Part shown: positions 8,249 to 29,927 of the stretch, piece by piece | How positions within the stretch are numbered: position 1 is the stretch's first letter | Layout of the letters: every line of letters starts with the position of its first letter | From: Parasitella parasitica NRRL 2501 | Lineage: Eukaryota; Fungi; Mucoromycota | Assembly (NCBI GenBank): GCA_025201805.1 | Contig: MU619414.1 | Location: 1 to 45,573 of the forward strand | Reading direction: 5' to 3' | Length of the DNA stretch: 45,573 nucleotides | The notes under the pieces: model-generated | What the model was told of the DNA's origin: nothing | The model's database searches: none | The model's input: only the letters and a program-made list of their open reading frames with translations | Position numbers and translations under genes: made by a program

Positions 8249-8699
8249 ATTATAGATATTATGCTTTTAAGCAGCATGGAAAAAGGTGATGGTCATGATT
8301 AAGTGACACCTATTTTAACCAGACCATAAAGCTACATGGAAATAACATTTGAAGTCATATTTTCAAGCATCTTGGCTATTGATTTGTATTTATACATAAC
8401 CACATTGCTTATGGAGTTTATGTTTTGCTCCTCAATTGAAATAGGTGCTTTACTGCTAAAGGCCCTATATTCACACTGGTAAATTCAAGCTCAGAAATAT
8501 GTTCCCATTGCCATACTTGCGGTAATAATATCTCTAGTAGAAGTTACATGTAAATAATATAACAATGCATATTTTTGTTAAATGTTTTTTATCAGCCTTT
8601 GAATTCTGCATCAAACTCTATATCGGTTTTTAGACTTTAAAACACCTTTTCCTATTACAGATGGTCTTGCTCTTACAATTTTTGATGCTTTTGTTTTGC

Positions 8700-10600
8700 G
8701 GCAAAAAAAGTTATATTCTGAGCCTATACAAACACATGGAGTCGTCGACCAATCAATCCATCGTATCAATATGTTGGTCGTATCCATAGTTTTACTATTT
8801 CTGTGGAATCGACGGCGCAAGATATATATATATATCTTCTTGTTATCGATTTCCGTAATTGTTTGATACGGGCGAAAAGATTGTTCATTTTCTTTTGCGG
8901 AACGCTGATTTTCATCTTCTTGGTGTTGAAGGTGAAACCCAACAAGAAGTCTTGGATATGGCTTGCTGTGAGGTGGTTGCTCTTCTCGAAGTTGATGATG
9001 AGCCCTAATTCTTGCAGGTGGTTCACTACTAGCTCGGCATTCGACAGAAATTCTGCCTTTGTTTTCCCCAAGGTGCAGATGTTGTCGTCTAAATAATTGG
9101 CCATCCTGATAGATACCCTTTTGCCGCAAAGATTCTAAGGCAAAGCGAGTCAATTTGGTAAAATGACAAGAGGGGAGGAACTCATCCCAAACACTAACGA
9201 AGAATAGCGGTATACAATACCTCTGTGTTCGAATGACAAATATTTCCTCGATTGGGAATGGATAGGGACAACTACATAGGCATCTTTGAGGTCGATTTTG
9301 ACTGCAAACTAGTCCTGTTCGATAAGTTGGCGCAAAGCAGCAGGTATGCCTTCTATCTTGAAATGTTGGACCTGGATGTGTTTGTTGATTCGCCGGCAAT
9401 CTAGTATATGGGTCGAATCTTGTTGGTTTCCTGGATCGTGAATAGAGTTGAGAGAAAACGGTCGTCTTGGTCCGGTGCCCGTTCGATTACTCTTGAGACC
9501 AAAAATTTTTTCACCACAGGATCCAGCGCCGGGTTCGGTGATCGGTGCCTCTGTTTCCATGGTACAGAGGAGGATTGGGACTGTATCTGGTATCCTCGGC
9601 TGATAATAGACAAGGGCTATTTGTGTGTTGTGATCTTTTTCTTCCAGTTGTGGAGGAAGTGCTGTAGACGTCCTCCTGGAGGAAACCCATCTGCCGGTAC
9701 AGTGTAATGCATGTCGATCTTTGTTTGTTTTCTATTTTCTGATGTTTTTTTTTTTTTTGCGCTTCTATTACGGTCGACGTCGATAATCTCACTGGTCTGT
9801 GGAGTTTGACGGATGGTGGGATATTGTTGTAGTTGGTGGGGTGGTTTTCCTCGACCCCTGCCCTTGCCAAAAAAATTACTTCGTCCTCCTCGTGAGAATC
9901 CTCCTCGATGGCTACTACGGTGGTTTCCTCGAGATTTGAAGCCGCCGTATGACCTTGAGGTGGCCTGTTTGAGGATCGTTTCTTCATAGCGGCCTTGGTA
10001 AATCTTCTCGACAACCTCGGTAGAAAAGGCCAAGTCCCTGTCTTCCTGTTTGTTGTCGCGGAGGTACTGCATGTTTTCTGGTAGCTTGATTGTCCTTGTG
10101 GCCAAATCTTTGGCATCTTGGTCCAACTCTTTACCAGTGGCGAACGAATAGACTGCCAAACGCTAGATTTTCTGCAAGATGATATCCATTTCATTCTTTC
10201 CACCTCCCTGTTCAATGATGTGTTGGAAGTCTGCAAAGATTTCAGCGCAGGCTCTTCCTGTCGTACGCAAACGATCGGCTCCCTTTTAGAAGGCATTGAT
10301 GGTCTGGGTGGCATCCAGCCTCTGCTTCTTGAGCTCGGATAAGAAGATACGATTAATGGCTCCCGATCTTGTCCATTTGCCTCCCTCATACTTGAGGAGG
10401 GTGTCTTTGCGGAATTGTTTGAGCTTGCGCCTAAGCTCAGAAGAGGTAGACTCTTCCAATTCTGTGATGATTTGTGTAGGTAAGTCAAAGAGCTGTGACC
10501 TGTCAAATGCTTCTTCTTCATTGTGATCTCCTTAATTTTTGAATTTTTTCGTCGGTGAGTCCATTGATACTTGACATAGTATTTCCACACCACGGTGCGC
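8700..10600 (-). mobile_element. DIRS-type retrotransposon, frameshifted and 3'-truncated (gag plus reverse transcriptase)
   Basis: A gag-like ORF with an RGG-rich tail overlaps the RT start PPGGRLQHFLHNWKK..IISRGYQI. RT motifs FLSTLFTIQE, ILDCRRINKHIQVQHFKIEG, KIDLKDAY, YLDD and LGLIINFEKS lie in shifting frames. No RNase H or tyrosine recombinase was seen. Confidence 0.85.
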
Positions 10601-10689
10601 GGTTTTGAAAGGTATGAAAGGAACAGGATAAAAGTTTATTACATATTTATATTGAAAATAATTAAAGCGTGGCTTGAGAGCCTATAACC

Positions 10690-10990
10690 ACATCCAATGT
10701 CGGATGGAGGCAACCTCAATTGTGTTAGAAGGAACGACACACAATCAATGCTATTGTCCGCAATGACGGTAAAAAATTGAATTTTATTCGTGTTACTTAC
10801 CGGTGGAAGCATACCGAACACAACCCCACCACATTTGAAGAAGTCATCAATGAACATTCTCAAATGTATGTCATCTAATTTATTAAGGAGCAAGTCAAAA
10901 ATAACATAATTTGGTATAATATAAAAGCAATATTGAGGCTCGACAGATCCGCCTTAAAATTTGCTCGATGTGATGGAGTACAATTATCTA
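10690..10990 (+). mobile_element. MULE transposase N-terminal fragment (WRKY/GCM1-like)
   Basis: The + frame reads IRVTYRWKHTEHNP, then IWYNIKAILRLD, resembling N-termini of fungal Mutator-like transposases. Confidence 0.45.
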
Positions 10991-15647: not shown

Positions 15648-16900
15648 TTAATTACGTGAGTCAGGAGATGAGGAGGTGTTGGTTGATGTCGATGCAGAAG
15701 GAACGGGCTCAGATTTGACAGCTTCAGACAAGTGAGGGCTATTTCTTTGAGAAGAGGGCTGGCTGTGCTGTTGGTGATGATGTTGAGATTGTTGCTGCTG
15801 ATGAGGCTGGGCTTGTTGATAGTAAACTTGAGGACTGCCAGCAGGTGATTGATGCATGACATGTTCATTATGTTGGCCCATCATAGGAGGACGAGAAATT
15901 TGCTGAGGACTTGCTTGGTGCATCATGTAACTATTGTGTTGATATTGAGGTTGCTGCTGCTGTTGCTGTTGATGTTGCTGCTGTTGCTGCTGCTGTTGAT
16001 GCTGCTGTCCTTGTTGCTGTTGCTGAGGTTGTTGTTGACTATTGTTATCACCACTGGGGACAATGACGGGGTAGCCCATAGGCGGATAAACAGGATTGAC
16101 AACGTAGGGCTGAGGCATAATTTGGTCTTTGTGATAGCTCGCATATTGGCCATATGGATCGTAGTGTGGACTGTATTGATTCAAATTACTGGGATAACCA
16201 AATGGCAGAGCAGGCGCACGCATGGGGGCATATTGGGCAGGCTGACCGGTTTGATCAGGAGCGTTCATCTCGGGAGCATTCTTACGGGTCTTTTCGTCTA
16301 CAATCAACGAAAATAAGATTAGATAATCAAGACGCGTAGGATGGAAAAAAAATTACATGTCAAAAAAAAAATTTTTTTTCTCTCTCTGACATTGTGCAAT
16401 CATATCACATCATTGATTCCCTTTGCCAAAAAGTATAAACTTACCACCAGTCTTTTGTCTTCTCTTGTAAGGGCCACGTTTGATGCCTTTCTTACGTTCC
16501 TTCCTAACAGAATTTACACAAGTGTCGGCGATTCCATACTTGATACATCTAGGGCAGGGTCTAGCATCATCACACTTTTTGCAAGCTTTTTGACAGTTGG
16601 CTTTGAAAAAGAATTAATATGAATGTACACAAGATGTAAACAATAACACAAAATGATAAATAAAGAAATCCACTTACTGCATGCGTTTTTCACTTGCTTT
16701 CGCTTGGGAGCTTGCTGGGAGCCAGTAACCATCGCTTGTTGCGACTGATCAGGAATACCGGGATGTTGCATAGGGGGGAGTCCGCTGTGATGGCCCAGCA
16801 TAGGAGCGTTATTCAGAACATTGGGCGCTTGAGGCTGGGCTTGATAAGGAGCTTGGGGTTGGTAGCCTTGCTGCTGCTGATAGTATGGCATAGATTGCAT
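15648..16900 (-). CDS. Zn(II)2Cys6 transcription factor with glutamine-rich C-terminus (3 exons)
   Basis: Exons 16900-16678, 16600-16445 and 16297-15648 splice to KNACTNCQKACKKCDDARPCPRCIKYGIADTC...RKERKKGIKRGPYKRR, followed by polyQ. Confidence 0.92.
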
Positions 16901-18014
16901 TTCAAATTGTTTTCAAGAACGATAAAAACTGAGAAAATAGAGGAGTCCTAATGAATGTGAGAAAAAAAAACTGGAAGAAAAAAAGCAAAAGTAAAAAAAA
17001 AAGGAAGAGTAAAAATAAATTCTTTGCTGCAAGGGTTTCTTTATGACAAAAGAAAAAAAAATTTTTCAATTTTTTTTTTTTTTTTTTTCAGAGGTTCCGT
17101 TTTTTTTGGTTTTTCTTGCACCCTTTTTTAGAATACGCTTTTTTCGGTCAGTATGCCAATGAAGTGTCTTTTCTCGGTGGGATTTGTAAAATACCAAAAA
17201 ATGGGGGAACAATGGCTTGTTTTTTCCATGAACCGAGAATCAAATGTCATAACAAGAGGGGGGAAAGAGGGGCCAAATGATCAGCATGTAAACACACACA
17301 CAAACAATATATGAGGAATATGCCCATTGAATATTACATATGTTTGTCAATTACAAAAAGGGAAAAAAAGCCAAATTCAACAAATGCGTACAAGAACATC
17401 GCCGCTGTAATCTGACGAGGGTGTTTAAAGTAAAAAAAAAACGAACAGGATGCCATTATAACGCAAGTAGCTCGAGAAAGTAAGGGAAAAGACGATAAAA
17501 GACACATCATTGGCATTCTGTTGCCAAGAAATGAAAGCATTCTTTGGTTTCCCATCAAACGCAGCGTGAAGGTAGAATAAAGTGATGTGTGGGTTTAAAA
17601 GGAGTCTTAACTTACCGCAATAATGAAAAAAAGTATTCTTGTCTTGTCTTGTCGTATTTATACGTATGTAAATACAGATTGTTATGAATACAAAAAAAAG
17701 GAAGAAAAAATGTTGTTGATGGAAAAAAGAAGACCAAATCTGTTTTGATTGCGAAAAAAACGAGATTTATCGATCGGGTATTCAACTCAGACGAAACATG
17801 GCAAGAGAAATGTCGCATTGCCTATAGCTAAATTGCAAGAGCACTCGCAAATATACAGAGCGAAAGATTGATAAAGCCGTAGAGTGTATGTCTAGGACTG
17901 GAAGAGCATCGATTGCTGTTATTTTGCCTATTGGAAACTTTTTTTTTTTTTGTCATTTAAGAAAGCTGAGATCAAATCTAGGAACCACGTTTTACTGTGT
18001 ATGTGATTTATCTG

Positions 18015-18019
<5 letters not shown>

Positions 18020-18072
<53 letters not shown>
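18020..18072. repeat. Poly(T) homopolymer of about 53 nt
   Basis: Direct count. Confidence 0.95.
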
Positions 18073-18257
18073 CAAGTATAGCATATTATACATTTTGTAT
18101 ATCAACACAGACATTTTTCAAGATTCGTTATCAAAGCTAAATTTGAGGGAAGGGAGAATGTATATGTAAAGAAAAACAAGGACGCCGAGCAAACGGAGAA
18201 CAAATGGTGGTATAATCATTTAGGCATTGTCATTTTAATTGGTGGTGTTTTTAAGCG

Positions 18258-21004
18258 CTACACTCGTTCCGCTACCATTTTTTTCCGTAAAACAGTAATA
18301 CGATGACGAATAGAACTGATGACTAGATAAAAGAAGAAATGTGAGTCAAAAGGAGCGAGATGCAAAAGCTAATAAACGTTACATTTGTTGATGATAAGCC
18401 GATCGTTCTCATCGATTGTCATTTCGCCTTTGGGACGGACTTGATAGATGGCTTCCAACATCCATATCGCCGTCTGATAATCTTGCTCACATTCAGTGAT
18501 GTTTTCTCCAACCAGTTCGTGGACCGCTGCAGCCCGACTCTGACAAAATCAGTTAGTAAATATATCCTAATGAGGACAAGACCACGGCTCTTACCATTTC
18601 CAACGCTCTGTCGTACAGTAGCTTGTCAACAAACGCACTGTTGTTGAGATTAGTCGACGCACTCATGTCAGTATCTACAGATTCAGCTCGTTCCAGGCTT
18701 TCATTGAACTTTTCTCGCATCCATTGCACTGCATCATACAACCTGCTTGCAGCAATTTTTCTCTCTTCTTCCTCTTCGACATCAATCAGGTCCGAGCTCC
18801 AGTACTGCTGTGCCACAGATAGCCCTACTTCTATCAGCGCCAATGCCTTGAGAAACAATGCGGATGTTTCCTCCGATAAAAGCTTCATGTCACCGCTACT
18901 GCCGTTTTGTAACAGCTCGTACTTCTGATCTCCATACTTTGCCACAGCATGAGCCATACACGCCATGCTCTCGATACGCTTTATCGTGTGATTTGTCTTG
19001 TGATGGCGTTGGTGATGGCGTTGGTCGTGTGACGATGACATAAATCCATGCGGTGACCCCACTAGATGATGAGGCTCTTTTGGTGGTGATGGCATGCTTG
19101 TGCCGAATAATCTGACAGATGCCTTGCTAATTGCTTTTGCCAGCGCAGAGCCTGCAGAAGAGCCTGTGCTTGATTTTCGTTCTCTAATGAATGGAGATGA
19201 AGAAGGAGAGACATTTGCGCTTGTTCCAGACGTAGCAGTGGGTATATTGACAGCATGTGATGTTGCAGCACTGCTTGGTGATTTTGACAACCTTCTTTCG
19301 TTCAATGGTGTTGATCGCGGAGGTGTGACTTTCAACTCTACAAACAGGCATACGTTAAATTTAATGCGCTTTCAAAAACACATGTGTAAAAACATACCGT
19401 CAGCAAATTGGTTTGTTTCAATCGAGCGAAGATCTAGCATGACATATTCCTGCAGCATTTCTTCTTCCTCTTTTTTGCTATTTTGAGGTTTGGTGCCTGA
19501 ATTCATCAAACTGCTAGGTTGAAACGGCGATGAGGGCGTCCAAGGCTGCTGATCTTTGGATTCAAACTTCGAAGGACGGCGACCTTGCGAATAAAGCGGC
19601 GAAATGGCGTCAGGGCCCGTATTCCTTCTTGTTTCAATCATGCCGTTAAAAAAAACACTTGTCCTTAAAATTCATGCATATAACATACCTCACAGTAGTA
19701 GATGACCATCTTCTTTGGTCTGGCTTACTGCTTGAAATTTGAGCAAATGGTGGTGGCTCATAGCTGCCCGTTTTATGATGATGGTGCTGCGAAGGATCAG
19801 ACTGGGACTGCGTCTGCTTGGAGGATGATCTTTGTGGTTGAACACTGGCTCTTCTTTGTATAGGCTGAGGTTGTGGTTGCTGCAGTAACACAGCAGGGTG
19901 GTTAAAGAACTCTTCAAACGACGATCGCTCGACTGGGTTCTTTTTAAGCAACTTTCGAATTAAGTCCTTTAAATCGCTTCCAATCACGATATCGCTATGG
20001 CGTTCGTCTGGAAATTGAATTTTATCGTTATTTTCCTGGATTTTCTTTAGTAGTTCAATGTGATTTTGCGCTCGAAATGGGGGTCGTCCGGTGACCATTT
20101 CGTACAAGACAGCGCCAACGCTCCATAAATCTGCTTTAGCATCGTATTTTTTATAGGATAAAATTTCTGGTCCCATGTACAGTGGTGAGCCGCAGAGGGT
20201 ATCAGCTAAGCTAGCATTGGGTAAAAATCGAGCAAAGCCAAAATCAGCGACTTTTAATACTGGTAAATCGTCGCTGTGGGTATTTGAAGGTGTTAATAGC
20301 AAATTCTATCGCAAAAATTGAGTAAAATGTCTATATTTTCCGTTGAATATACTGTATACCTGCGGTTTGATGTCTCTGTGAATGAGGTTTTGTGATCTTA
20401 AGAACTGTAATGCATTTGCTTAATTGATAAATTAAGTTAGACTCGATTCCTTTAACCAAGAAATTACATGTAGTTTTCTCTTTTTACCAAGTTGCTTTAA
20501 AAAGTGGCGAACAACCCTTTCTGGCAATCCACCAGCAGTGTTTTTGATTGATTTGTCTGAGCGAATTTCTTTAATGTAATGCGACAAGTCACCCATCGTG
20601 CAATACTCCATCACCAAATAAATATGTGCTTCCGTTTTCTATCGTTATAATGAGTTTTTTCTTTTTTTTCTCCATGCAAGTGGTACATGGCATTAATCTT
20701 ACCTGACATTCAATCAAACCAACAATATTGTCATGTCTTATCCTTGTAAGAATGGATATTTCTGATTCAAGATTCTCCAGCAATTTCTTTGTTAATTTAG
20801 ATCTCTTTACACATTTTATTGCAACGTTCTGGCGGGTGTCCTAATCATGAAGTTAGCCATCTGCATTTTCGCTTATCTATTATTTCTTACTTTATGCTGC
20901 GCTTTATACACTACTGCAAAAGATCCTTGTCCAATGCGATTTTTTATCAGGTAATCTCCAACTTGTTCAATTTTTTTATCCACAAATGTATGTGATGAAG
21001 ACAT
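18258..21004 (-). CDS. ATG1: Serine/threonine kinase Atg1 (multi-exon)
   Basis: [67 protein letters not shown], and a C-terminal MIT-like region ([11 protein letters not shown]); canonical introns. Confidence 0.95.
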
Positions 21005-21545
21005 GTCTTAATAGTTTAGGTATACTGATGTTATAATGATAATAATAAAAAAGTGAGAGAGAGAGAAATAAAAGGGGGGGCAAGAGCCAAAGGGAATTAT
21101 TTAAAAAGAGTAAAATCACTTTATGATTGGAAGGCTCGTTTTCAATCATGTGCGAGCAATGGAGTCATCCTGGCACAGCAACGCACACCAGCTGAAAAAA
21201 AAAAATAAAAATAAAAATAAAAAATGACACACAACGTAAATGACTTGAAGAACAGAAAGCTATAAATTTACTGATTCAAATGTTTTGATGGAAATACCTA
21301 TTAAAATGGAATGAGCCAAGTGTTTGCTTATAAAGGGCAAATATTACACCTAGACCCAACATCCCTTTTTTTTTTTTTTCGCTTTAGAAACGAATTATTA
21401 TTTGTGTTGGATCATGTGCCTTAATTTTTTTTTTTCTATCAGAGATCTATTTAAACTTTTTTTTTTGTTGCCATGCGTTTGATTAAATTTTCTTCATTTT
21501 TTATACTTTTTTTTTTTTATTTTTATTTTTAATATATACGCAAAT

Positions 21546-23193
21546 ATGGTACGTACCTTCCAGCTGTTTCCTTTTATTATGAAATTCTCATCTAGTTTAA
21601 TAAGCTTACGGCCCCTTATGTTCATTCAACTAACGCTACTCAACGAGATGTTCGAGGTAGTCATGACAATACAACGCCTACCACTTCAATGATTGATTAT
21701 ACCAACTTGTATATAAAGAATTTGGATCCTGTAGTCACCAGCTACGACTTATTCGAAAAATTTAAAGCTTATGGTAAAATCATCTCTGCCAGAGTAATGA
21801 AAGATACTATGACAGGCATCTCCAAAGGCTATGGATTTGTTAGTTATACGACTATGGAGGAAGCAAATGAAGCTTTGCAAAATATGAATGGCACTACCTT
21901 GAACTCCAAGACACTTACCGTTACGTTTCATACACATAAAAAATCTGTTCACCAGCAACCAAAGCAACCGAAAATGCACCCAGATTATATCAACTTATCT
22001 CCTCCTTCGAGCGCATCAACTGCTCTAAACAACCAAAAATACCCTTCTCAGCTATCTCCACCTTACCAATGTCATAATGTGCCTACCTCATCTTATGATT
22101 TTGCTCAAGAACAATATCATAATATACCCTCAAATGTAAGTTATTGTTTACAATATGTTTGGTGAAGAAAAACAAACAAACAAGCACTAGTTTTTTTGTT
22201 ATTATTCTTAAATGGTTACCATGACAACCGAGCCTCCTAACCCCCCTTTTTTTTTTACCGTTTCCATGGTTTCTGATTTCTTTCTTTCTTTCTTTCTTTA
22301 TAGCTGACCTCGCCTTCTTTTCAACGACCTGATAATCCTTGGAAGGAAACTGGTGGCTGGATACAACCTTCTGCGGGACCTTATCATGCGTATCATCATA
22401 CTTCATCGATGCATATTGCAGGACATCCAGCAACAACAAATACAACAACAAATGCATCCGTACTGGTGTCACCCAACAATAGCCCACCTTTGATTGATTT
22501 AGAAACCTCGCCTAATAACAATATACCTGGTTACTATCAAAAGCGTCAAGAAATTGATGCTGACACCAGCCAAATTCATTTACAAAAAATTCGCTCTGCT
22601 GTAGCATCTCATTTGAAAGACTATCAACAAAAGGATTTGAATGATTTGGTAGACTTGATCAAATCTTTGAAAAGAAAAGATTTATCACTTTGTTTGTTTA
22701 ATTCTGCTTTTTTGAAGCAAAAGATTGATGAAGCTTACGAGGCTCTAAGCTTGTTTCAGATTCCTGCCAACACACAACAACAGCAGGTTTCCTCCATGTC
22801 AACAACGCCTTCTCTTGTCCCTCACCAAACAGTAGATTCATCAGCAAACAATGGCTTCAACCATGCAATGGCCTTTTTGAGGTTATTAAACGGATTCAAG
22901 TTGAATGACAAGAAACGGGCCTTTGGCGAAATTTTCTTTCCGTATGTTAGAGTAAGTATATTTATTTCAAGTAGCATTGCTGAACCTCACATCATTCAAA
23001 CCACTAGGCCACAGGTGTCAAATATGCTCCAAAAGTTACTATTCGTTTGTTGGACACTGTTCCTTTGGAAGAACTAGCCATTCTTACGGATAATAAAGAA
23101 AAACTGACGAAAATGGCTGAAAATGCATATGCTCACGTTCGATCCACACTACACCAGCAGCAGCAGCAGCAGCAGCAGCAAAAACAAGAATGA
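21546..23193 (+). CDS. RNA-binding protein with one RRM and two MLLE/PABC-like domains (Rrm4-like)
   Basis: RNP2 NLYIKNL and RNP1 KGYGFVSY. LSLCLFNSAFLKQKIDEAYEAL and KRAFGEIFFPYVR|ATGVKYAPKVTIRLLD resemble MLLE domains. ATG at 21546 is followed by intron 21549-21604, in frame with the RRM exon. Confidence 0.85.
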
Positions 23194-23362
23194 ATATTAA
23201 AAATACAAACATGAACTAAATAGTTTTTCCTCGATTATTTACGACATTCATTTATTATACGATTCATGCTTTTATTTTTTATTTTTTTTCCCTCTTTTCT
23301 CTATGCTATTAACATTTTTATGAACTTATCAAATATCCAATATCTATTCAAATAAACTAGTC

Positions 23363-24733
23363 TTACTCATAGCCCCCAATCCCATCAAACATAAAGTAGT
23401 CATCTTGAAATGATGGCAATATTTTGTCAAATGATTCCACATAGGTATTAGAACTACCAGCAAAATTCATGCATCCGATCGTTGTATTTTCTACGGTGTA
23501 GAATTCTGGCTTGGGGGAATTGTTGGATCGATCATCTCTGTATCTTTTCACAAAATGCCACGGACGTTGATCTTGATTCACATCGAAAAAGACTGATTTT
23601 GGAATCTGTTTCATCAAATTTGCATGTACAAACAAAGGCGGCCGCTGCTGCTGCTGCTGGTGGTGGTGGTGGTGATGATCGGCTGCATATTGAAGCATGC
23701 TGTGGCCGCAAAATGTTCCATTTAACATGAATCCCCCCATACCTAAAAAGGTCTCGATGCGATGAAAAGGTGCATCCAAGGCTCTCCATGCATATTGAAA
23801 CGTATCTTTATCCCCATTCAAAAGTCGAAAGTAGACCTCATGAAAGTATTGCATAAACCAGCTAAGCTGCAATGGCATCCAGTGCCTTGCTTTGTCAACC
23901 ACGATTTGCCCGGATTCTTGCTCCCATGTGTCGATACATTCTATTTCTAACAATCGAAATATCTTGTTCTCTGCAGCTGTCTTCCAAAAATCAGGCCAGA
24001 ATATAGCTCCCTTTTCCTTGTACTCGGTTGTATCAAATAAAAATGTAGGATCTCGGGTTGGGATATTGTCAGAATCAAGATAGAGAACATGTTGGAACCG
24101 GGAATTAATGATGGCTGCTGCTTTGACTTGAAATCTACACATGCATGCGATTCAAAAAGAGATTTTTAACGTCTGGAAATTCTTGGGTCATACCAAACAT
24201 AGATCAACCTACTGCTTTCCTCGATTTCTCATCCTACTAATGTACCTTGGCAACCCAGACTCAGATAGATCACGCAGCCTCACGTTACCTAGCAACTCTA
24301 ATACCTTTGCACTAAACGTAGCGGTAGCAGCTTGAGCCTCGTGCTCCATATGCCAAATTTCAATAGGTAGCGTACAATTGTAAAAACGTAAAAGCCGTAT
24401 TGTGCTTGACGTACGTTTCAATGTATCGTCATTACCTGCCACAAATACGATCCCTCTATCTTCCTGCCAACTTGTAGGCTGTGGTTTTGCCTTTTCTTTT
24501 TGAATGAAATCTTTCCATCCAAATTTATATCTGTCAATTGAAATATCAGATAGCTGGTTCCAATAAGCTCTGTTGGTGTCTCGATGGTGGTTATCCACAT
24601 TTCTTTCTACATTTGAATCAAGACATCTGCCCGAGTAACCCTCTATGTTGTATTCTTGATTTCGGATAGATAACATGTACATGGTATATACTATCAAGCA
24701 CGCAATGACAGCACATGATCTTTGTTTAAACAT
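23363..24733 (-). CDS. GT71-family alpha-mannosyltransferase (MNN2/MNN5-like), 2 exons
   Basis: N-terminal signal-anchor, RGIVFVAG, LPIEIW, DxD motif LYLDSDNIP, GAIFWPDFWKT, QESGQ and GDKDTF; intron 24212-24135. Confidence 0.92.
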
Positions 24734-24920
24734 GGGGGGTTTTATTCGAGAGAAATGCTTCTAAATAGGATAAAAGCAATTATTATACAATTTTATATCA
24801 ACGTTTTGAGGATACACAAGGTTATTAAAAGATCGTCGTTTTTTTCCCCACCATCTATTGGGAACTATGATGGATTATTACAAGTACCAATACAATGACA
24901 CAAGGGCAACACAAGCAAAT

Positions 24921-25250
24921 CTATTTCGCAGCTTCCTTCAGCTCAGCAGGTGGCTCATCGATTTCTTTCCAAATAGCCTCCAATTTCTTTCTCTTTTCTT
25001 GAGCTTTGCCTTTATTTGCTGCTCGCATGGCAAGAAACTATGCACTTGAGTGTCAAAACAATACCATTTTAATAAATAAAAAAAAGCGTCTAGACATTAC
25101 CTCCTCTTTTAAGCACTCGTCCACAGCTCTCTTGGCTGCATTGCAAGTGCCAATAAACTTGTTAAATGTTCCGGCTCTATGACATTCTTCCAAGGCTTCA
25201 ATCACTTTGTCGCAACCTTCATGTTTATGTGCGTCTAAGGGGGGATGCAT
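24921..25250 (-). CDS. CMC2: Twin CX9C cytochrome c oxidase assembly protein Cmc2, 2 exons
   Basis: MHPPL..H.H..C..VIEALEECH...KFIGTCN..KRAVDECLKEE; second exon ends ...AELKEAAK*. Confidence 0.9.
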
Positions 25251-25444
25251 ATTGTCAATATAATAATAATATTAATGAAGAAAGAAATGAAGTGTATCAG
25301 ACCCTGGTGCACTCAAATCATCCATTGCGGGGTATATGGAAAAAGTATGATGCAGTGTGGGTAGTTTTATACTCACTCTGGTTTTTTTTCTCTCTCTCTC
25401 TCTCTCCACTTGCTCTCTCTCTCTCTTTCTTAACCATTTATTAT

Positions 25445-25903
25445 ATGAAAGAATCACAACTTAAGCTCGGACGGTTGGTTCAATGTTTTTGTTCAGATTG
25501 CAACTGGAATGAACAAGGTTTTCAGTGGATCTTACCCAGAACAAAAAGTAAGCATGTTATGTATGAGAAATCAATCAAATATAAAGACACACAAGGTACA
25601 GTAAGGTGTAGCACCTTGTAGACGTTCATAGATTTTGATGATATGCTGTACATAGCGCAGAAAGATATGGATATGATCCAACAAAATCTTGCATTTATAT
25701 CCATAAACAGTGATCATGGTGGGATTGTCGTTAAAAAGAAGCCGAGAAAACCTGCCTTTCGACTATCGATGGCTTTACAAAGAAAATTAAATCAGATCGG
25801 TTACAAGGAAACGTTGGTAGTACTGAAGGAGTTTACTGTAACCTCCTCCCCATCCTCGTTTGATGCCTGCTTGCAAGATATACCAGTTACAGATTATTAC
25901 TGA
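25445..25903 (+). mobile_element. Possible CACTA/EnSpm-like transposase 5' fragment
   Basis: VQCFCSDC....GFQWILPRTKSKH resembles the C.C..C...RT...H leader of fungal CACTA-like transposases; no catalytic core follows. Confidence 0.35.
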
Positions 25904-26478: not shown

Positions 26479-26563
26479 TATTCATCACTTAATTTATGAT
26501 AGTGTAAGTTTATAGCCTTAACTTATAATAGAAATTTGAAGATTATTTAATCCAATACAAATA

Positions 26564-27415
26564 CAACTATCCCTTGGTAGTTGATCCCTGAAAGGCTGAT
26601 TTATCCAATTCACAGCTACTTGTTCTCAAGTAATTTGTACAACATATTCCTGGGTTCTTGCTCCGACCAGGGGAGGGGCGGGGACGATATTATGGCCAAG
26701 ATGATGCTTTCAAGTGGCATCTACTAACAGATGACCTGACTACTATTGGATCGTATTAAACGCTTAAAGTGCCATTTAAAGTCCTTTTGGCCAGAAGGCC
26801 CAAGAAAATAGCTTTCCTGTTGAAATAAAGCTACACTCAATGCTCTGCATACTACATACGTAACATGCAATGCAGAAATCGTTGGCAATAAACTTACGAG
26901 AGAGGGTGATGTCGAGATCATGACACAACTACGTACATAGCAGCCTGGATTTCCCGGGTATTGTACGGATCAAGTAAGATGCAATTTGAGAAAAGGCTAA
27001 ATGCAAGGTGCCTCTTTTTAGGCGCTGTATGCATATGTTAAACTTGCGCTTCCACTGCAATCGGGAACACCTACAGTTTTAGCCAGGCCTGCAGCATACG
27101 TTATATTATCAACAATGTCAGCAGAATGAATAGCAGGCATGGACCTGGTACTAATCAATATGGAACGTATCCCCCGTCCCCCTCCCCAATCAAAGCAACG
27201 AATCTCCTCGGCACAGATACTAGTATACAATATAGCATTCGCCCGGGACCTGGGTGATGAGAAAGTGCTTGGTGGCAATTATCTGCTGATAGTTTGAAAA
27301 CGATTAATTTCTCATTTAAAGCGCGTGAGCAAGCAAACCCAACAAAATGCAATCTAGATATTGTGATGTACTGCCAATTCCCAAACATATGCGTCATACA
27401 GTAGCTTGGATAAAT
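26564..27415 (+). ncRNA. Putative large structured non-coding RNA (~850 nt), family unknown
   Basis: Nested long-range stems 26599-26620/27400-27415 and 26658-26686/27168-27198, plus about ten local helices, most with G-U wobbles on the + strand; no convincing ORF. Confidence 0.6.
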
Positions 27416-27552
27416 GAGGCTATGTTGTGTGTTACATGTTCATGTAATGTCAGTACTCTGCCCACTTCTTTGCAGCGTTTCAACATCCGATGTAAAGCTT
27501 GTACGGTACTAGATCAAATATGCCTGGCTATTTGTTTTTTTATCAAGTAGTC

Positions 27553-27726
27553 ATGAATATTATTTCTCGTGAAGAAGCAGTGTATTTGTTTTATGCCGTT
27601 CCGTTCAATCAAGAGAACGTGAATAAATACACTTCGATAATCAATCAGATTGAGGACGTAGATATATATTTTACTCGAAACCCTCATAAAACCCAGATTG
27701 TTATGCACCAGAGTTATTTACGCTAA
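27553..27726 (+). CDS. Small accessory ORF (MNIISREEAVYLFYAVPFNQ...), copy 1
   Basis: ATG at 27553; conserved at protein level with the inverted copy at 28948-29111. Confidence 0.65.
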   Translation: MNIISREEAVYLFYAVPFNQENVNKYTSIINQIEDVDIYFTRNPHKTQIVMHQSYLR

Positions 27727-27744
27727 TGCATTTGATATTCATTT

Positions 27745-28841
27745 GTGCTTAAAACTTGGTATTTGTTTACAGTAAAAAAAGTTTTTGTTCCTCCTAAGAC
27801 CAATTTTATTGTTACTATAGAATCAAAGGAGCAACTAAAGCAGTTTATACAAATTGTATATCTATCCACTGATCCTAAATCAATAACATATGAGCAGAGA
27901 TTTATGTCACTTAATGATAGTATGTCAGATTTGTGGAAGTATACTTTAGTTTTTCGAGAAGAGCGTATTAACAACTTCGTTAACTGGTGTACGGCACAGA
28001 AGTTTGAATTTCTGAACGCAAGAAATAAAAGGAAACAGAAAGACTCTGAGTTAAGAACATCACAAAGAGCATTATACGTATTAAAGAGTGGCTATAGAGG
28101 TAAGTGACGTTTAACATTATCTGTTTATTATTATTAATTATCGTATTGTAGATATTTTATTGAAAGAGATAGCTAAAGTACATGAAAAATACCAAGACTA
28201 TATTGCCAACTTAAAAAAAAGAAGGCTACTGCATATTAGGATATTGCCCTAAATCAAGATAGAGATGAAGCTGTAAAGTCACTTCGAAACATGATTACCG
28301 GATTGAAAAGCAGGTCTTTAGTCGAATATGTGTACGTCGCTGTCAGTTGCAATGCCAAGACTCCGATGAACAGAAGAGACTTGCAAAAAGTACTCTGCTC
28401 TACCAGCCCGTAAACCTTTTCTCCTGCTAAACAGATTTCAAGGTCTACAGAAGCTGTTAAGAAAAAGAATATGATAATAGGCGAGTTATCAGGAGTGATT
28501 GGTAAAGCACAAGGTATCCAACATCTTACAAAATGCAATTATAATTAATACTAATTTTTGTTGATAGATTTTAAAGGAATTGGCAAAGATGTTTAGTGGT
28601 TATCGATTCGGCGGGTTTAACCACAAACATGAGCGATTTAAAATCATTCATTCGGTATGTGAAGTATTATTTTTTGCAAAACGATTAGCTAACTTTGGCT
28701 TCAGTGAGCATCGCTCATGATAATCAAGTACATGTAGTGGAATGCGATGAGGAAATCGTCAAATTAAAATTTCTATTTAAATTTGATGGTTGAGAAAATT
28801 TATTTCATCGCTCCAAGATGTTACCCTCTCCCACTCCCTAA
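27745..28841 (+). pseudogene. Intron-containing decayed gene with a serine-recombinase (resolvase)-like C-terminal domain
   Basis: Introns 28100-28151, ~28513-28567 and ~28654-28704. The reconstruction reads LKKEGYCILGYCPKS..DEAVKSLRNMITGLKSRSLVEYVYVAVSCNAKTPMNRRD...GKAQ..CLVVIDSAGLTTNMSDLKSFI...FKFDG*ENLFHRS, with frameshifts and stops. Confidence 0.6.
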
Positions 28842-28947
28842 ATGATTTAGTTCTTAAATGATTAATTAAAGCTAGTATTATTTTATCGCTTCAGAAGTTC
28901 GTTTAGTTGCTTGCAAAATTGCAGGATATTGTTTATATTCTAATGGA

Positions 28948-29111
28948 TTAATCTTCATTGATTTTTAGCGAGCAAAGTAATGGGCGCTTCGGATTTTCAG
29001 AGTAGCAAAGGGTTATACCTTCTATTTCATCGATGATTTTGGAATATTTATTCACGCTCTTTTGATTGAACGGAACGGCATAAAACAAACACACTGCTTC
29101 TTCACGAGAAA
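28948..29111 (-). pseudogene. Inverted second copy of the small accessory ORF
   Basis: SREEAVCLFYAVPFNQKSVNKYSKIIDEIEGITLCYSENP aligns with copy 1; 64/67 nt identical over 29045-29111. Confidence 0.85.
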
Positions 29112-29384
29112 AACCAAGTGACGAGCTGAAATGAACGTCCGAAAACCAAGTAGTAAATTTGGTTAAATGAATCATGCAATGTGCTACGATGTTTATTATA
29201 ATATAAATTACTCATTTCAAGGGAATAGTATAACTATATGGGCTGTAGGAATGCAACTAATTACAAAAATGATAAGATGTGGGGTGATGAGTAATACTTG
29301 TTTATCAACATTTAGGCAAAGAGAGAGTGTGTGTGTTCTATAGTATATACAGGCGTAAATATAAATAAACAAATCTGATGATGA

Positions 29385-29927
29385 TTAATCGGTGCAACTC
29401 TCAGCAGCATCCACAAACAGATCTTCATCATCACCATTACCCTTACCCACATCATGCTTGTTGCTGCTTGTTAAAGGCTGCATCAAATTACTACAACTAA
29501 CACTCTTGTCTTGGTTTATAACAGTAACCGTTTCGTTGAATGACACCGACTTGGACCTCGATTTTTTGGTAATTCTGATATCATTCTCAACTTTAAATGT
29601 GTAGGAATTAGTGATGGTGTTTCTCTCTAGCTCTGTACATGTTGCCATGACAGGCTCTTTCGATTCTCCAAGCCAATTCTGATTTTGTGATGGCAGTCTT
29701 TTTATAGCGTGAAAATAAGACGACTGCTTCATCATCATCGCGCTACTGTTTGGTGGTGGTGGTGATATAATGCTATTGGCATTGCTATCAAGGTATATGG
29801 AGAGCAAATGGTAGATTGATTTGTCAATGTCTATTTCTTTCTGGGTCAGTTTTGTTTGCTGCCGTTGTTGCTGCTGAGTGTTATGAAATGTTGGGTATAC
29901 GGCAGGTAATCTTGGTTCAACGTTCAT
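29385..29927 (-). CDS. Hypothetical low-complexity protein with RVxF-like motif
   Basis: Open frame from ATG 29927 (MNVEPRLPAVYPTF), with polyQ and KSVSFNETVTV near the C-terminus. Confidence 0.65.
   Translation of the reverse strand: MNVEPRLPAVYPTFHNTQQQQRQQTKLTQKEIDIDKSIYHLLSIYLDSNANSIISPPPPNSSAMMMKQSSYFHAIKRLPSQNQNWLGESKEPVMATCTELERNTITNSYTFKVENDIRITKKSRSKSVSFNETVTVINQDKSVSCSNLMQPLTSSNKHDVGKGNGDDEDLFVDAAESCTD

Follow-up and report, generated by a model that had tools for sequence, protein, structure and literature searches.

A decayed inverted-repeat cassette in Parasitella parasitica, probably a dead copy of a Mucorales-specific mobile element whose long protein has a predicted serine-recombinase fold

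The locus and its flanks

We have analyzed a 45,573-nucleotide stretch of the genome of Parasitella parasitica NRRL 2501 (contig MU619414.1 of assembly GCA_025201805.1), referred to here as the window. Between positions 27504 and 29151 it carries an inserted cassette of 1,648 bp, in which a leader, a long pseudogene, a short open reading frame that faces it and a second leader follow one another. The cassette is preceded by the remnant of a host gene and followed by another host gene. The features are as follows.

26555-27431, minus strand: aldo/keto-reductase pseudogene outside the cassette, identified by tblastn and colinear DNA matches to contig C21 of the same genome
27504-29151, plus strand: whole inserted cassette, its limits set against an empty site
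27553-27723, plus strand: exon 1 of the long gene, N-terminal domain, 57 codons; N-domain HMM match at 27553-27714 (E 2.2e-6) and alignment with the N-domains of full-length members
27563-27653, plus strand: left inverted-repeat arm, lying within exon 1; 91 nt that pair with 29021-29111 at 85% complementarity (blastn 90% over 81 nt)
27814-28100, plus strand: exon 2, winged-helix domain; HMM match at 27814-28098 (E 2.7e-23)
28153-28792, plus strand: broken exons of a serine-recombinase-like (SR) domain, from three-frame translation and SR-domain HMM fragments
28966-29106, minus strand: facing mini-ORF with the N-domain only, a convergent mini-paralog; N-domain HMM, E 1.2e-10
29021-29111, minus strand: right inverted-repeat arm, pairing with 27563-27653 (85-90% identical)
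29388-29927, minus strand: flanking host gene X, the synteny anchor; 180 aa, no Pfam family

The long gene (27553 to about 28790) is a pseudogene, with two frameshifts, in-frame stops, an Arg-to-Pro replacement in its GYxRKS motif and a lost C-terminus. A preliminary description of this DNA had reported an ORF of about 57 aa followed by an intron-containing frame with ILGYCPKS ... VYV ... LVVID. Both are present, the second as a multi-exon frame, but the ORF does not stand alone as a gene: its counterpart is exon 1 of full-length members of the family described below, with which it aligns. Exon 1 is degenerate (ICY has become IYF) and its frame is closed by a stop, while that of exon 2 is still open up to a GTAAGT intron that begins at 28101. 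The GT..AG introns lie at 28101-28152, about 28516-28573 and about 28656-28705. The serine-recombinase-like exons contain a frameshift in an A-run near 28213-28221; in GYCPKS, Pro replaces the conserved Arg, and stops and then the second frameshift follow. A further stop (28411-28413) comes after LCSTSP; LVVIDSAGLTTN is retained. The C-terminal F-x-CR...RSK tail is lost, the frame ending in KFDG and a stop. Only fragments of the SR-domain HMM are matched in the window, at 28255-28389 (profile positions 19-63) and 28587-28658 (positions 92-115). Exons were searched individually, and the full-length analyses given below were made on database proteins.

The tract upstream of the cassette had been described as about 850 nt of structured non-coding RNA acting together with a resolvase-fold protein, in the manner of bridge RNAs, omegaRNAs or IStrons. 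The nested inverted matches on which this was based are real (26593-26608 with 27406-27421, 16 nt, 88%; 26670-26689 with 27168-27187, 20 nt, 75%). The minimum free energy has a z-score of -2.15 on the plus strand, where 1 of 20 shuffled sequences folds as well, and of -0.68 on the minus strand; overall the tract folds no better than chance. It matches no Rfam family by gathering or E-value thresholds, and is instead the remnant of an aldo/keto-reductase gene on the opposite strand. An intact paralog on contig C21, which matches Pfam PF00248 with E values of 2e-20 and 2e-27, aligns by tblastn to 27030-26614 (E 1.9e-10, with several in-frame stops) and to 27288-27136, and colinear DNA matches to C21 extend over 26569-26625, 26947-27035 and 27406-27431. 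The remnant lies outside the insert and is also present in a second Parasitella assembly that lacks the cassette, and thus in both Parasitella lineages. The co-occurrence of tract and gene, a check suggested in the preliminary description, was sought in the 900 nt upstream of 16 other copies of the gene; these have nothing in common with the tract, which by the standard set in that description refutes the RNA part of its proposal. Known RNA-guided systems (IS110 with its bridge RNA, TnpB with omegaRNA, IStrons) keep a conserved structured RNA beside the recombinase or nuclease, whereas the upstream regions of the 17 copies share no element. We therefore consider a role for this tract as a guide-like RNA extremely improbable, and follow-up effort on it can be spared.

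Two further observations concern the same tract. The inverted 16-mers were considered as the ends of a terminal-inverted-repeat element, and this was rejected: no contig other than C21 has the tract in common, and on C21 it is the aldo/keto-reductase gene. At least 18 sites in the genome contain the 19-mer TTGGATAAATGAGGCTATG, and these belong to an unrelated repeat.

The protein family and its fold

Intact long genes have 3-4 introns and encode about 350-390 aa, arranged as a 65-aa N-domain, a winged helix, a long helix and a C-terminal domain with the catalytic fold of serine recombinases; the short gene encodes the N-domain only. The family comprises 613 representative clusters at 50% identity (phmmer, E <= 1e-3) and is unannotated: all 18 named members that were checked are Mucorales "hypothetical proteins". 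A profile search with word pre-filtering returned only 4 proteins and is uninformative on taxonomic range. The Parasitella genome harbours at least 13-26 divergent paralogs, and many copies of the family are pseudogenes. Literature searches found no description of this protein family.

The AlphaFold2 model of an intact member of the Hesseltinella type, P0010, scores pLDDT 91.7 and pTM 0.80. When its residues 206-349 were compared with 48,161 PDB chains by VIA-align, which works independently of Foldseek, the top 13 were all serine-recombinase catalytic domains (Z 7.1-9.9), led by gamma-delta resolvase (2rsl; Z 9.9, rmsd 2.5, 102 of 115 residues) and TP901-1 (Z 9.9), and including Sin, Tn3, Bxb1, phiC31, TnpX and IS1535 TnpA; the best unrelated chain reached Z 5.6. 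Foldseek searches of PDB and BFVD and an Atlas shape search agree, the best viral matches by Foldseek being IS607-type COG2452 proteins (250 columns, E 1.3e-4). The resolvase fold proposed in the preliminary description is thus borne out, and as modelled the long protein has the fold of bacterial serine recombinases. The winged helix matches the RFX DNA-binding domain (1dp7; Z 6.2, 73 of 76 residues). The N-domain, folded alone and searched against PDB, found nothing better than Z 2.5, and is thus without a known fold.

Part of the serine-recombinase active site is nearly invariant. Among 129 aligned representatives the Gly-Tyr-x-Arg-x-Ser motif (motif A), located at strand 1 of the catalytic core, is conserved at G (95%), Y211 (99%), R213 (99%), K (93%) and S215 (89%), and an RD pair is found in 94%. 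The position that we take to be equivalent to D67 of gamma-delta resolvase (D298) is conserved in 84%, and those that presumably correspond to the motif C arginines carry other residues, Y (45%) or F (43%) at 299 for R68 and L (84%) at 302 for R71, these equivalences being drawn from the secondary structure of the model and resolvase numbering rather than from a residue-level structural alignment. The long E helix that follows the core of resolvases is absent from the P0010 model, which has two short helices there (338-343 and 345-351) and ends at residue 362, about 25 residues past strand 5; a 27-residue helix (177-203) precedes the core instead. Sequence profiles do not recognise the family. 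Pfam gave no match for 8 members or exons, PF00239 found nothing across the whole genome while matching in 12 control genomes, NCBIfam and PDB profile searches on family members found nothing, and hhalign of the family profile with E. coli PinE aligned only 15 columns, those of motif A. The substituted arginines, the missing helix and the blindness of these profiles argue against an active recombinase, and catalysis of conservative site-specific recombination by the family is putative.

The lack of the two arginines and of the E helix would also fit a lineage-specific family of host genes, such as DNA-binding regulators derived from a recombinase fold that lost its activity. These would have multiplied by ordinary duplication rather than by an activity of their own, and their inverted repeats would be local duplications. 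Replacement of the motif A serine by Pro in some members, the age of the Parasitella paralogs (30-50% amino acid identity), the spliceosomal introns and the occurrence of solo genes without repeats in several genera point the same way. However, the active-site region keeps its polar residues almost unchanged across the family, and many copies are pseudogenes. Together with the evidence for mobility given below, this makes a non-mobile host family quite improbable.

Cassette anatomy, the empty site and mobility

In an intact cassette an inverted repeat encloses two convergent genes. Its arms supply the promoter region, frequently together with tandem arrays, and codons 1 to 30-50 of each gene; every cassette has its arm boundary within exon 1, and from either arm the reading direction is inward, into an N-domain. 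An inverted partial copy of exon 1 beyond the 3' end of the long gene had gone unnoticed in the preliminary description. In the window the mini-ORF is shortened and no longer has a start codon of its own. Of the approximately 17 fairly complete copies in the genome, 12 (that in the window and 11 others) have such a facing N-domain mini-ORF, as do all three Hesseltinella loci. Not every locus takes the cassette form: mini-gene and repeat are both missing from single loci examined in Phycomyces, Lichtheimia and Gongronella, and from the relatives in M. saturninus, M. mucedo and Pilaira of the copy on contig C29.

Arm identity ranges from 100% (over at least 3.6 kb on C29, counting readable bases only, and over 690 nt on C22) down to 81%; the intact cassettes on C22, C209 and C15 have arms of between 200 and 700 nt. 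Arms are 91-100% identical in cassettes whose proteins share only 30-50% identity with each other. The identical C29 arms both contain a Tc1/mariner ORF, and copying between the two arms is needed to account for this. These observations, and the presence in both arms of a promoter and the same 5' coding part with a boundary always inside exon 1, could be explained by an inversion cassette like that of Hin or of the 2-micron FLP system: the arms would be substrates, the spacer would be flipped by the serine-recombinase-like protein or by host homologous recombination, each flip would reassemble the long gene on the opposite strand with the 5' part that the second arm provides, and spread would be rare and secondary. 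However, no inversion isomer was observed, and the two Hesseltinella copies have the same orientation. The inner arm boundaries differ among copies, and a fixed crossover site is thus lacking. Past the identical part the mini-ORFs are conserved in their own way, 5 of 8 having a Cys after P..P.L that no long gene has, which favours two separate genes over a single gene with a choice of 5' ends. Nor would inversion by itself explain the empty site or the cross-genus identity described below, and we regard it as a rather unlikely account of the cassette.

The comparison of filled and empty sites proposed in the preliminary description was made with the second Parasitella assembly (L082), which is colinear with the window on both sides at 72-82% DNA identity. 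Here the equivalents of positions 29152 and 27503 are joined directly (L082 7786|7787), and the 1,648 bp between them in the window are a discrete insertion, polymorphic between the two Parasitella lineages. No target duplication longer than 1 nt is seen at the empty-site junction, and no domains of the family were found in L082. The syntenic site of Mucor plumbeus is also without a cassette. Host gene X anchors these comparisons: a relative adjoins the empty site in L082 (72% amino acid identity), and others adjoin the intact aldo/keto reductase on C21 (52%) and in Mucor plumbeus. An exact-protein lookup of gene X gave no record.

Comparisons between genera point to movement of other copies. 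Over 1,283 bp the C29 copy shares 97.97% DNA identity with a copy in Pilaira anomala that lies in a different context, while host genes of Pilaira are 65-81% identical; in M. saturninus the corresponding figures are 86-93% for the copy and 69-80% for host genes. C29-type copies occupy non-syntenic positions in four species, and two identical protein copies are found on different contigs in Hesseltinella. No recent duplicate of the family was seen within the Parasitella genome. The empty syntenic site, and a similarity to the Pilaira copy that greatly exceeds what host genes show, make the family look mobile; both, together with the non-syntenic C29-type copies, speak against ordinary host gene duplication. 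Two points do not fit a classic transposon, namely that the outer arm ends of seven cassettes have no conserved terminal motif, and that the cassette form is not universal. Target duplications were likewise not found at those ends, and the sequences flanking the C22 and C3 arms on the outside show none.

The best overall explanation, and in our judgement a probable one, is that 27504-29151 holds a mobile cassette of a kind specific to Mucorales, in a copy that is dead and fixed. The preliminary description had recognised a decayed fungal element without DDE, reverse-transcriptase, tyrosine-recombinase or TnpB genes, and a discrete insertion with a broken gene agrees with this; the sequence features that it listed are real and half of its interpretation holds, the supposed RNA being a host pseudogene. 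New here are the inverted-repeat cassette with its facing N-domain mini-gene, the empty syntenic site and the 98% identical copy in another genus.

In intact cassettes the long protein would most likely bind the arms through its winged helix, presumably a DNA-binding domain, and use the conserved serine for conservative break-and-join recombination. The cassette would then move as a whole and leave no target-site duplication; that the stretch between the arms is inverted instead is less likely. The mini-protein may modulate the long protein via the shared N-domain. A bolder reading, which we offer tentatively and with some doubt, is that the family represents a previously unrecognised superfamily of eukaryotic mobile DNA. 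Its serine-recombinase-derived enzyme would be active with a rebuilt active site, in which residues particular to the family (R-D, T-Q-D and the C-terminal CR...RSK) take over from R68 and R71 and act with the Ser and Arg of motif A. The cassette, with its two genes and inverted repeat, would be moved with no duplication of the target and would spread horizontally among Mucorales, perhaps via the cytoplasmic fusions made by the mycoparasite Parasitella. A Mucorales-wide family of hundreds of clusters with this fold would add an enzyme class to fungal transposon biology, a case strengthened by the cassette layout, the insertion polymorphism and the signs of horizontal transfer. It would also account for many "hypothetical proteins" of medically and industrially relevant Mucorales and provide a compact, eukaryote-adapted recombinase scaffold for testing.

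Comparison with known systems

To our knowledge, the mobile DNA of eukaryotes uses DDE, reverse-transcriptase, tyrosine-recombinase or HUH enzymes. In the literature searched, the serine recombinases of eukaryotes are confined to a small number of IS607-like elements from protists and giant viruses. Unlike cut-and-paste DDE transposons with terminal inverted repeats, the Mucorales cassette has no DDE domain, and its empty-site junction shows no duplication longer than 1 nt. MuDR/Mutator-type elements have convergent genes driven from promoters in both terminal inverted repeats, and some transposons encode truncated inhibitors, such as Tn5 Inh and the P-element KP protein, which are shorter proteins with the N-terminal part of the transposase. 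The Mucorales cassette resembles them in both respects, with convergent genes presumably driven by promoters in the repeat and a shorter protein that shares the N-terminus. However, MuDR/Mutator, Tn5 and the P element have transposases of DDE or RNase-H type and make target-site duplications, whereas the Mucorales enzyme has a predicted serine-recombinase fold and no duplication is seen. The 2-micron plasmid carries the gene of FLP, a eukaryotic tyrosine recombinase, together with inverted repeats; it is similar in associating a recombinase gene with long, perfectly homogenised inverted repeats, but the Mucorales cassette is chromosomal and multi-copy and its enzyme fold is that of serine recombinases.

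The small serine resolvases and invertases (gamma-delta, Tn3, Sin, Hin, Gin, PinE) share the catalytic-core fold (Z 9.3-9.9) and G-Y-x-R-x-S at strand 1, and the gene of Hin also lies inside a segment bounded by inverted repeats. In the Mucorales protein, however, the DNA-binding domain precedes the core instead of following it, and motif C reads D-[YF]-A-G-L rather than D-R-x-x-R. The cassette arms run to hundreds or thousands of bp and take in coding sequence, compared with sites of 26 bp, and inversion was not observed for the Mucorales cassette.

Giant viruses and a small number of eukaryotes carry IS607-like elements (Bao and Jurka 2013, PMC3627910). The Mucorales protein differs from IS607-family TnpA (COG2452) in having no detectable sequence similarity past motif A, an extra N-domain, no equivalents of R68 and R71 and no long E helix. 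Its DNA-binding domain resembles RFX (Z 6.2) rather than the MerR type of IS607. Its gene has spliceosomal introns and no TnpB/Fanzor partner in the cassette; IS607-type elements have neither terminal inverted repeats nor target duplications, while the Mucorales cassettes combine long inverted arms and a facing mini-gene with the same absence of target duplication. The likenesses are in the order of domains, with a winged-helix-type DNA-binding domain at the N-terminus followed by a serine-recombinase catalytic domain at the C-terminus, in insertion without target-site duplication, and in structure, IS607-type proteins being the best matches in the viral library and IS1535 TnpA matching with Z 7.1.

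A pseudogene and the tract upstream of it

The window features needed here are, in order:

26555-27431, minus strand: aldo/keto-reductase pseudogene, paralogous to locus L061 (contig C21:30800-34800 of the source genome)
27553 to about 28790, plus strand: recombinase-like gene (the long gene)
28966-29106, minus strand: facing mini-ORF, found by the N-domain HMM
29388-29927, minus strand: gene X, a flanking host gene; a 52%-identical paralog directly precedes the C21 reductase

The preliminary description reported a separate ORF of ~57 aa followed by a spliced gene. The 57-codon ORF (27553-27723) and, after it, a multi-exon frame with ILGYCPKS, VYV and LVVID are both present. The small ORF, the next exon and the recombinase-like exon were each searched for in the source genome; they recur at many loci, keeping this order and a common orientation, and all three pieces are united in full-length annotated proteins of other Mucorales. 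By this arrangement the short ORF is exon 1 of the long gene, coding its N-terminal domain, instead of a gene apart. The view of the window copy as decayed was confirmed: it has a frameshift in an A-run near 28213-28221, GYCPKS with Pro replacing an invariant Arg, then stops, a second frameshift, a stop at 28411-28413, and loss of the conserved C-terminal tail. To judge from these lesions, it is a pseudogene.

The tract 5' of the ORF had been taken for a structured RNA working with the recombinase. Two nested inverted matches were indeed found there in a repeat search of the window. Rfam gave no match for the tract, and its folding was unconvincing against shuffles (z = -2.15 on the plus strand, with 1 of 20 shuffles equally good; z = -0.68 on the minus strand). 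DNA comparison with the whole source genome (32.8 Mb) located its sole relative on C21, where it matches an aldo/keto-reductase gene that is still intact (PF00248, E 2e-20 and 2e-27). On the minus strand of the window the C21 protein matches 27030-26614 (E 1.9e-10) and also 27288-27136, and several stops interrupt the reading frame. The 900 nt 5' of 16 other copies of the recombinase-like gene have nothing in common with the tract. Taken together, these results refute the RNA part of the description, and an RNA-guided element, with a host reductase pseudogene in place of its RNA, is hardly credible.

The window and C21 are paralogous segments: on C21, X and the reductase stand side by side and intact, and in the window the reductase is decayed. 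Mucor plumbeus has the same gene pair, X then directly an intact 337-aa reductase. The reductase is also decayed in the second Parasitella assembly, and its decay is thus older than the cassette insertion. An unrelated dispersed repeat with at least 18 copies in the source genome, ~150 nt of it well conserved (including C6:397454, C32:171906, C46:33120, C69:78837 and C74:103046), shares by chance the 19-mer TTGGATAAATGA[GT]GCTATG with window 27406-27424.

Predicted fold, active site and family

A Hesseltinella-type family protein, P0010 (362 aa), was modelled with AlphaFold2 from an alignment of 150 family members (pLDDT 91.7, pTM 0.80). For residues 206-349, the top 13 of 48,161 PDB chains were all serine-recombinase catalytic domains, led by gamma-delta resolvase (Z 9.9, rmsd 2.5 Å, 102/115 residues) and TP901-1 integrase (Z 9.9) and including Sin, Tn3, Bxb1, phiC31, TnpX and IS1535 TnpA; the best unrelated chain scored Z 5.6. 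Foldseek searches of PDB, Atlas and a viral library were concordant, bearing out the resolvase fold first surmised from the window. Residues 86-177 form a winged helix resembling the RFX DNA-binding domain (Z 6.2, 73/76 residues). Residues 1-70 (model m0da971fd837a; pLDDT above 90 for 1-65) are the N-domain common to the long gene and the mini-gene; modelled alone (pLDDT 84), it resembled no PDB structure (best Z 2.5).

Among 150 representatives, motif A is almost invariant, with G (95%), Y (99%), R (99%), K (93%) and S (89%). A Ser (94%), an R-D pair (94%) and G-x-T-Q-D are conserved as well; the D67-equivalent Asp stands at 84% and the C-terminal F-x-C-R...R-S tail at 73-90%. The domain is homologous to serine recombinases in fold and at motif A. 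Two defining features failed: the positions equated with R68 and R71 from the secondary structure of the model are Tyr/Phe and Leu, and the long E helix after the core is absent from the P0010 model. We therefore regard the domain as a derivative of the serine-recombinase family and do not file it as a member; its recombination activity is putative.

A phmmer search of 1.84 billion representatives with one member, P0004, returned 613 clusters at E <= 1e-3 and 266 at E <= 1e-10. All 18 members looked up are Mucorales 'hypothetical proteins' (Mucor, Pilaira, Thamnidium, Rhizopus, Phycomyces, Lichtheimia, Hesseltinella, Gongronella, Absidia, Apophysomyces, Syncephalastrum); a profile search added Sporodiniella, and the ESM Atlas clusters are from Mucoromycota only. 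For the members searched, no Pfam or NCBIfam entry covers the family and no PDB sequence matches it; no description was found among open-access papers. Many copies are pseudogenes.

Anatomy of the cassette

Domain-HMM scans of six-frame translations revealed a feature absent from the preliminary description: past the 3' end of the long gene and on the opposite strand lies a short N-domain-only ORF. Besides the window, this mini-ORF occurs on C8, C67, C31, C326, C209, C29, C15, C127, C22, C3 and C37 and in 3 of 3 Hesseltinella loci. In most of these copies the 5' parts of the convergent pair are inverted repeats of each other, and the inner limit of this repeat falls within exon 1.

Inverted-repeat arms of cassettes in the source genome (copy; identity; length)
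C29; 100%; at least 3.6 kb readable, a Tc1/mariner ORF in each arm
C22; 99.9%; 690 nt, a deletion derivative with a 511-nt spacer
C209; 96%; 329 nt
C15; 91-95%; about 240 nt
C3; 87%; 378 nt
Window; 85-90%; 81-91 nt
C37; 81%; 214 nt

The C29 copy (15851-25491; L062/L073/L074) is a palindrome of ~9.6 kb. Over 3,404 + 245 readable bases its two arms of ~4 kb show 100% identity, and each carries a 438-aa Tc1/mariner transposase ORF (L062 1204-2520). The 1,563-bp spacer between them holds a recombinase-like gene that appears intact. Perfect arms in young copies fit either recency of the copy or copying between arms, the latter favoured by the transposon insertion common to both C29 arms.

Intact cassettes have tandem arrays just 5' of the start codons of the two genes, made of 12-nt units (x11 and x20) in Hesseltinella and of 41-nt units (x8) on C15; the arrays lie at L070 5828-5969 and 7965-8233 and at L063 5084-5413. 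The window copy has none. The arrays are candidate protein-binding iterons or promoter elements. Next to several cassettes, stretches read as N are placed symmetrically in the arms, apparently over these arrays (L068 on C97, 1371-3980 and 5565-7161; L062 4256-4690 and 6744-7088; L069 7685-10000; L067 4629-5018), and they raise the identity given by the repeat search. Outside the stretch of identity, the mini-ORFs still have the domain's conserved P..Y..Y end, and 5 of 8 have a common Cys found in none of the long genes, which suggests a distinct gene under selection. Neither mini-gene nor repeat is present at the one locus sampled in each of Phycomyces, Lichtheimia and Gongronella, or in the copies of M. 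saturninus, M. mucedo and Pilaira that are related to C29.

In Hesseltinella vesiculosa, L070 and L071 hold identical cassettes inside a larger 5-kb segment, 98% identical between contigs. A further inverted-repeat pair (8483-8712 / 10600-10829) is part of this segment, and a 2.5-kb block that flanks the cassette on one side in L070 flanks it on the other in L071.

Mobility and mechanism

The comparison of filled and empty sites proposed at the outset was informative. Locus L082 of the second Parasitella assembly (GCA_000938895.1) is colinear with the window through LtrA, X, the reductase remnant, Cmc1 and a mannosyltransferase (72-82% DNA identity) and lacks window 27504-29151, its flanks joining at L082 7786|7787. 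Junction ambiguity is at most 1 nt, and hence no target duplication is present. One end of the insert lies 49 nt before the long-gene ATG and the other about 40 nt past the right arm. The two-gene cassette moved in one piece. It is missing from Mucor plumbeus and from the C21 segment as well, so that insertion in the NRRL 2501 lineage is the parsimonious reading. Two identical protein copies occur on two Hesseltinella contigs.

Divergence between genera bears on mobility as well. C29:19998-21274 and Pilaira anomala L075 9901-11183 share 97.97% DNA identity in different gene neighbourhoods; the Pilaira flanks match the source genome elsewhere, at only 65-81% (ribosomal protein S14 gene, 81%). 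The M. saturninus copy likewise has other neighbours and reaches 86-93% identity, where host genes such as Sec24 and a DEAD helicase reach 69-80%. Copy identity above that of host genes, in differing contexts, suggests horizontal transfer, and the C29/Pilaira pair is a candidate case of horizontal transposon transfer in which one genome is that of a mycoparasite. Parasitella parasitises other Mucorales by fusing with them, which would offer a route. The Pilaira copy begins ~60 nt inside the C29 left-arm inner boundary and is without exon 1.

Overall, this is probably a mobile cassette whose movement depends on an enzyme derived from serine recombinases. We hold the descriptive part (anatomy, fold, family and mobility) with high confidence; the enzymatic part is tentative, at even chances or somewhat less. 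The winged helix is predicted to recognise the arms, and the enzyme would move the cassette leaving no target duplication. That the inverted arms instead mark an inversion cassette is unlikely beside the empty site, and a non-mobile host family on an inactivated fold, the reading on which the R68 and R71 positions bear, is less likely still. IS607 and Tn4451-type serine transposition likewise leaves no target duplication, and IS607-type COG2452 'integrase-resolvase' proteins were the best viral-library matches to the model, with both domains aligned (E 1.3e-4).
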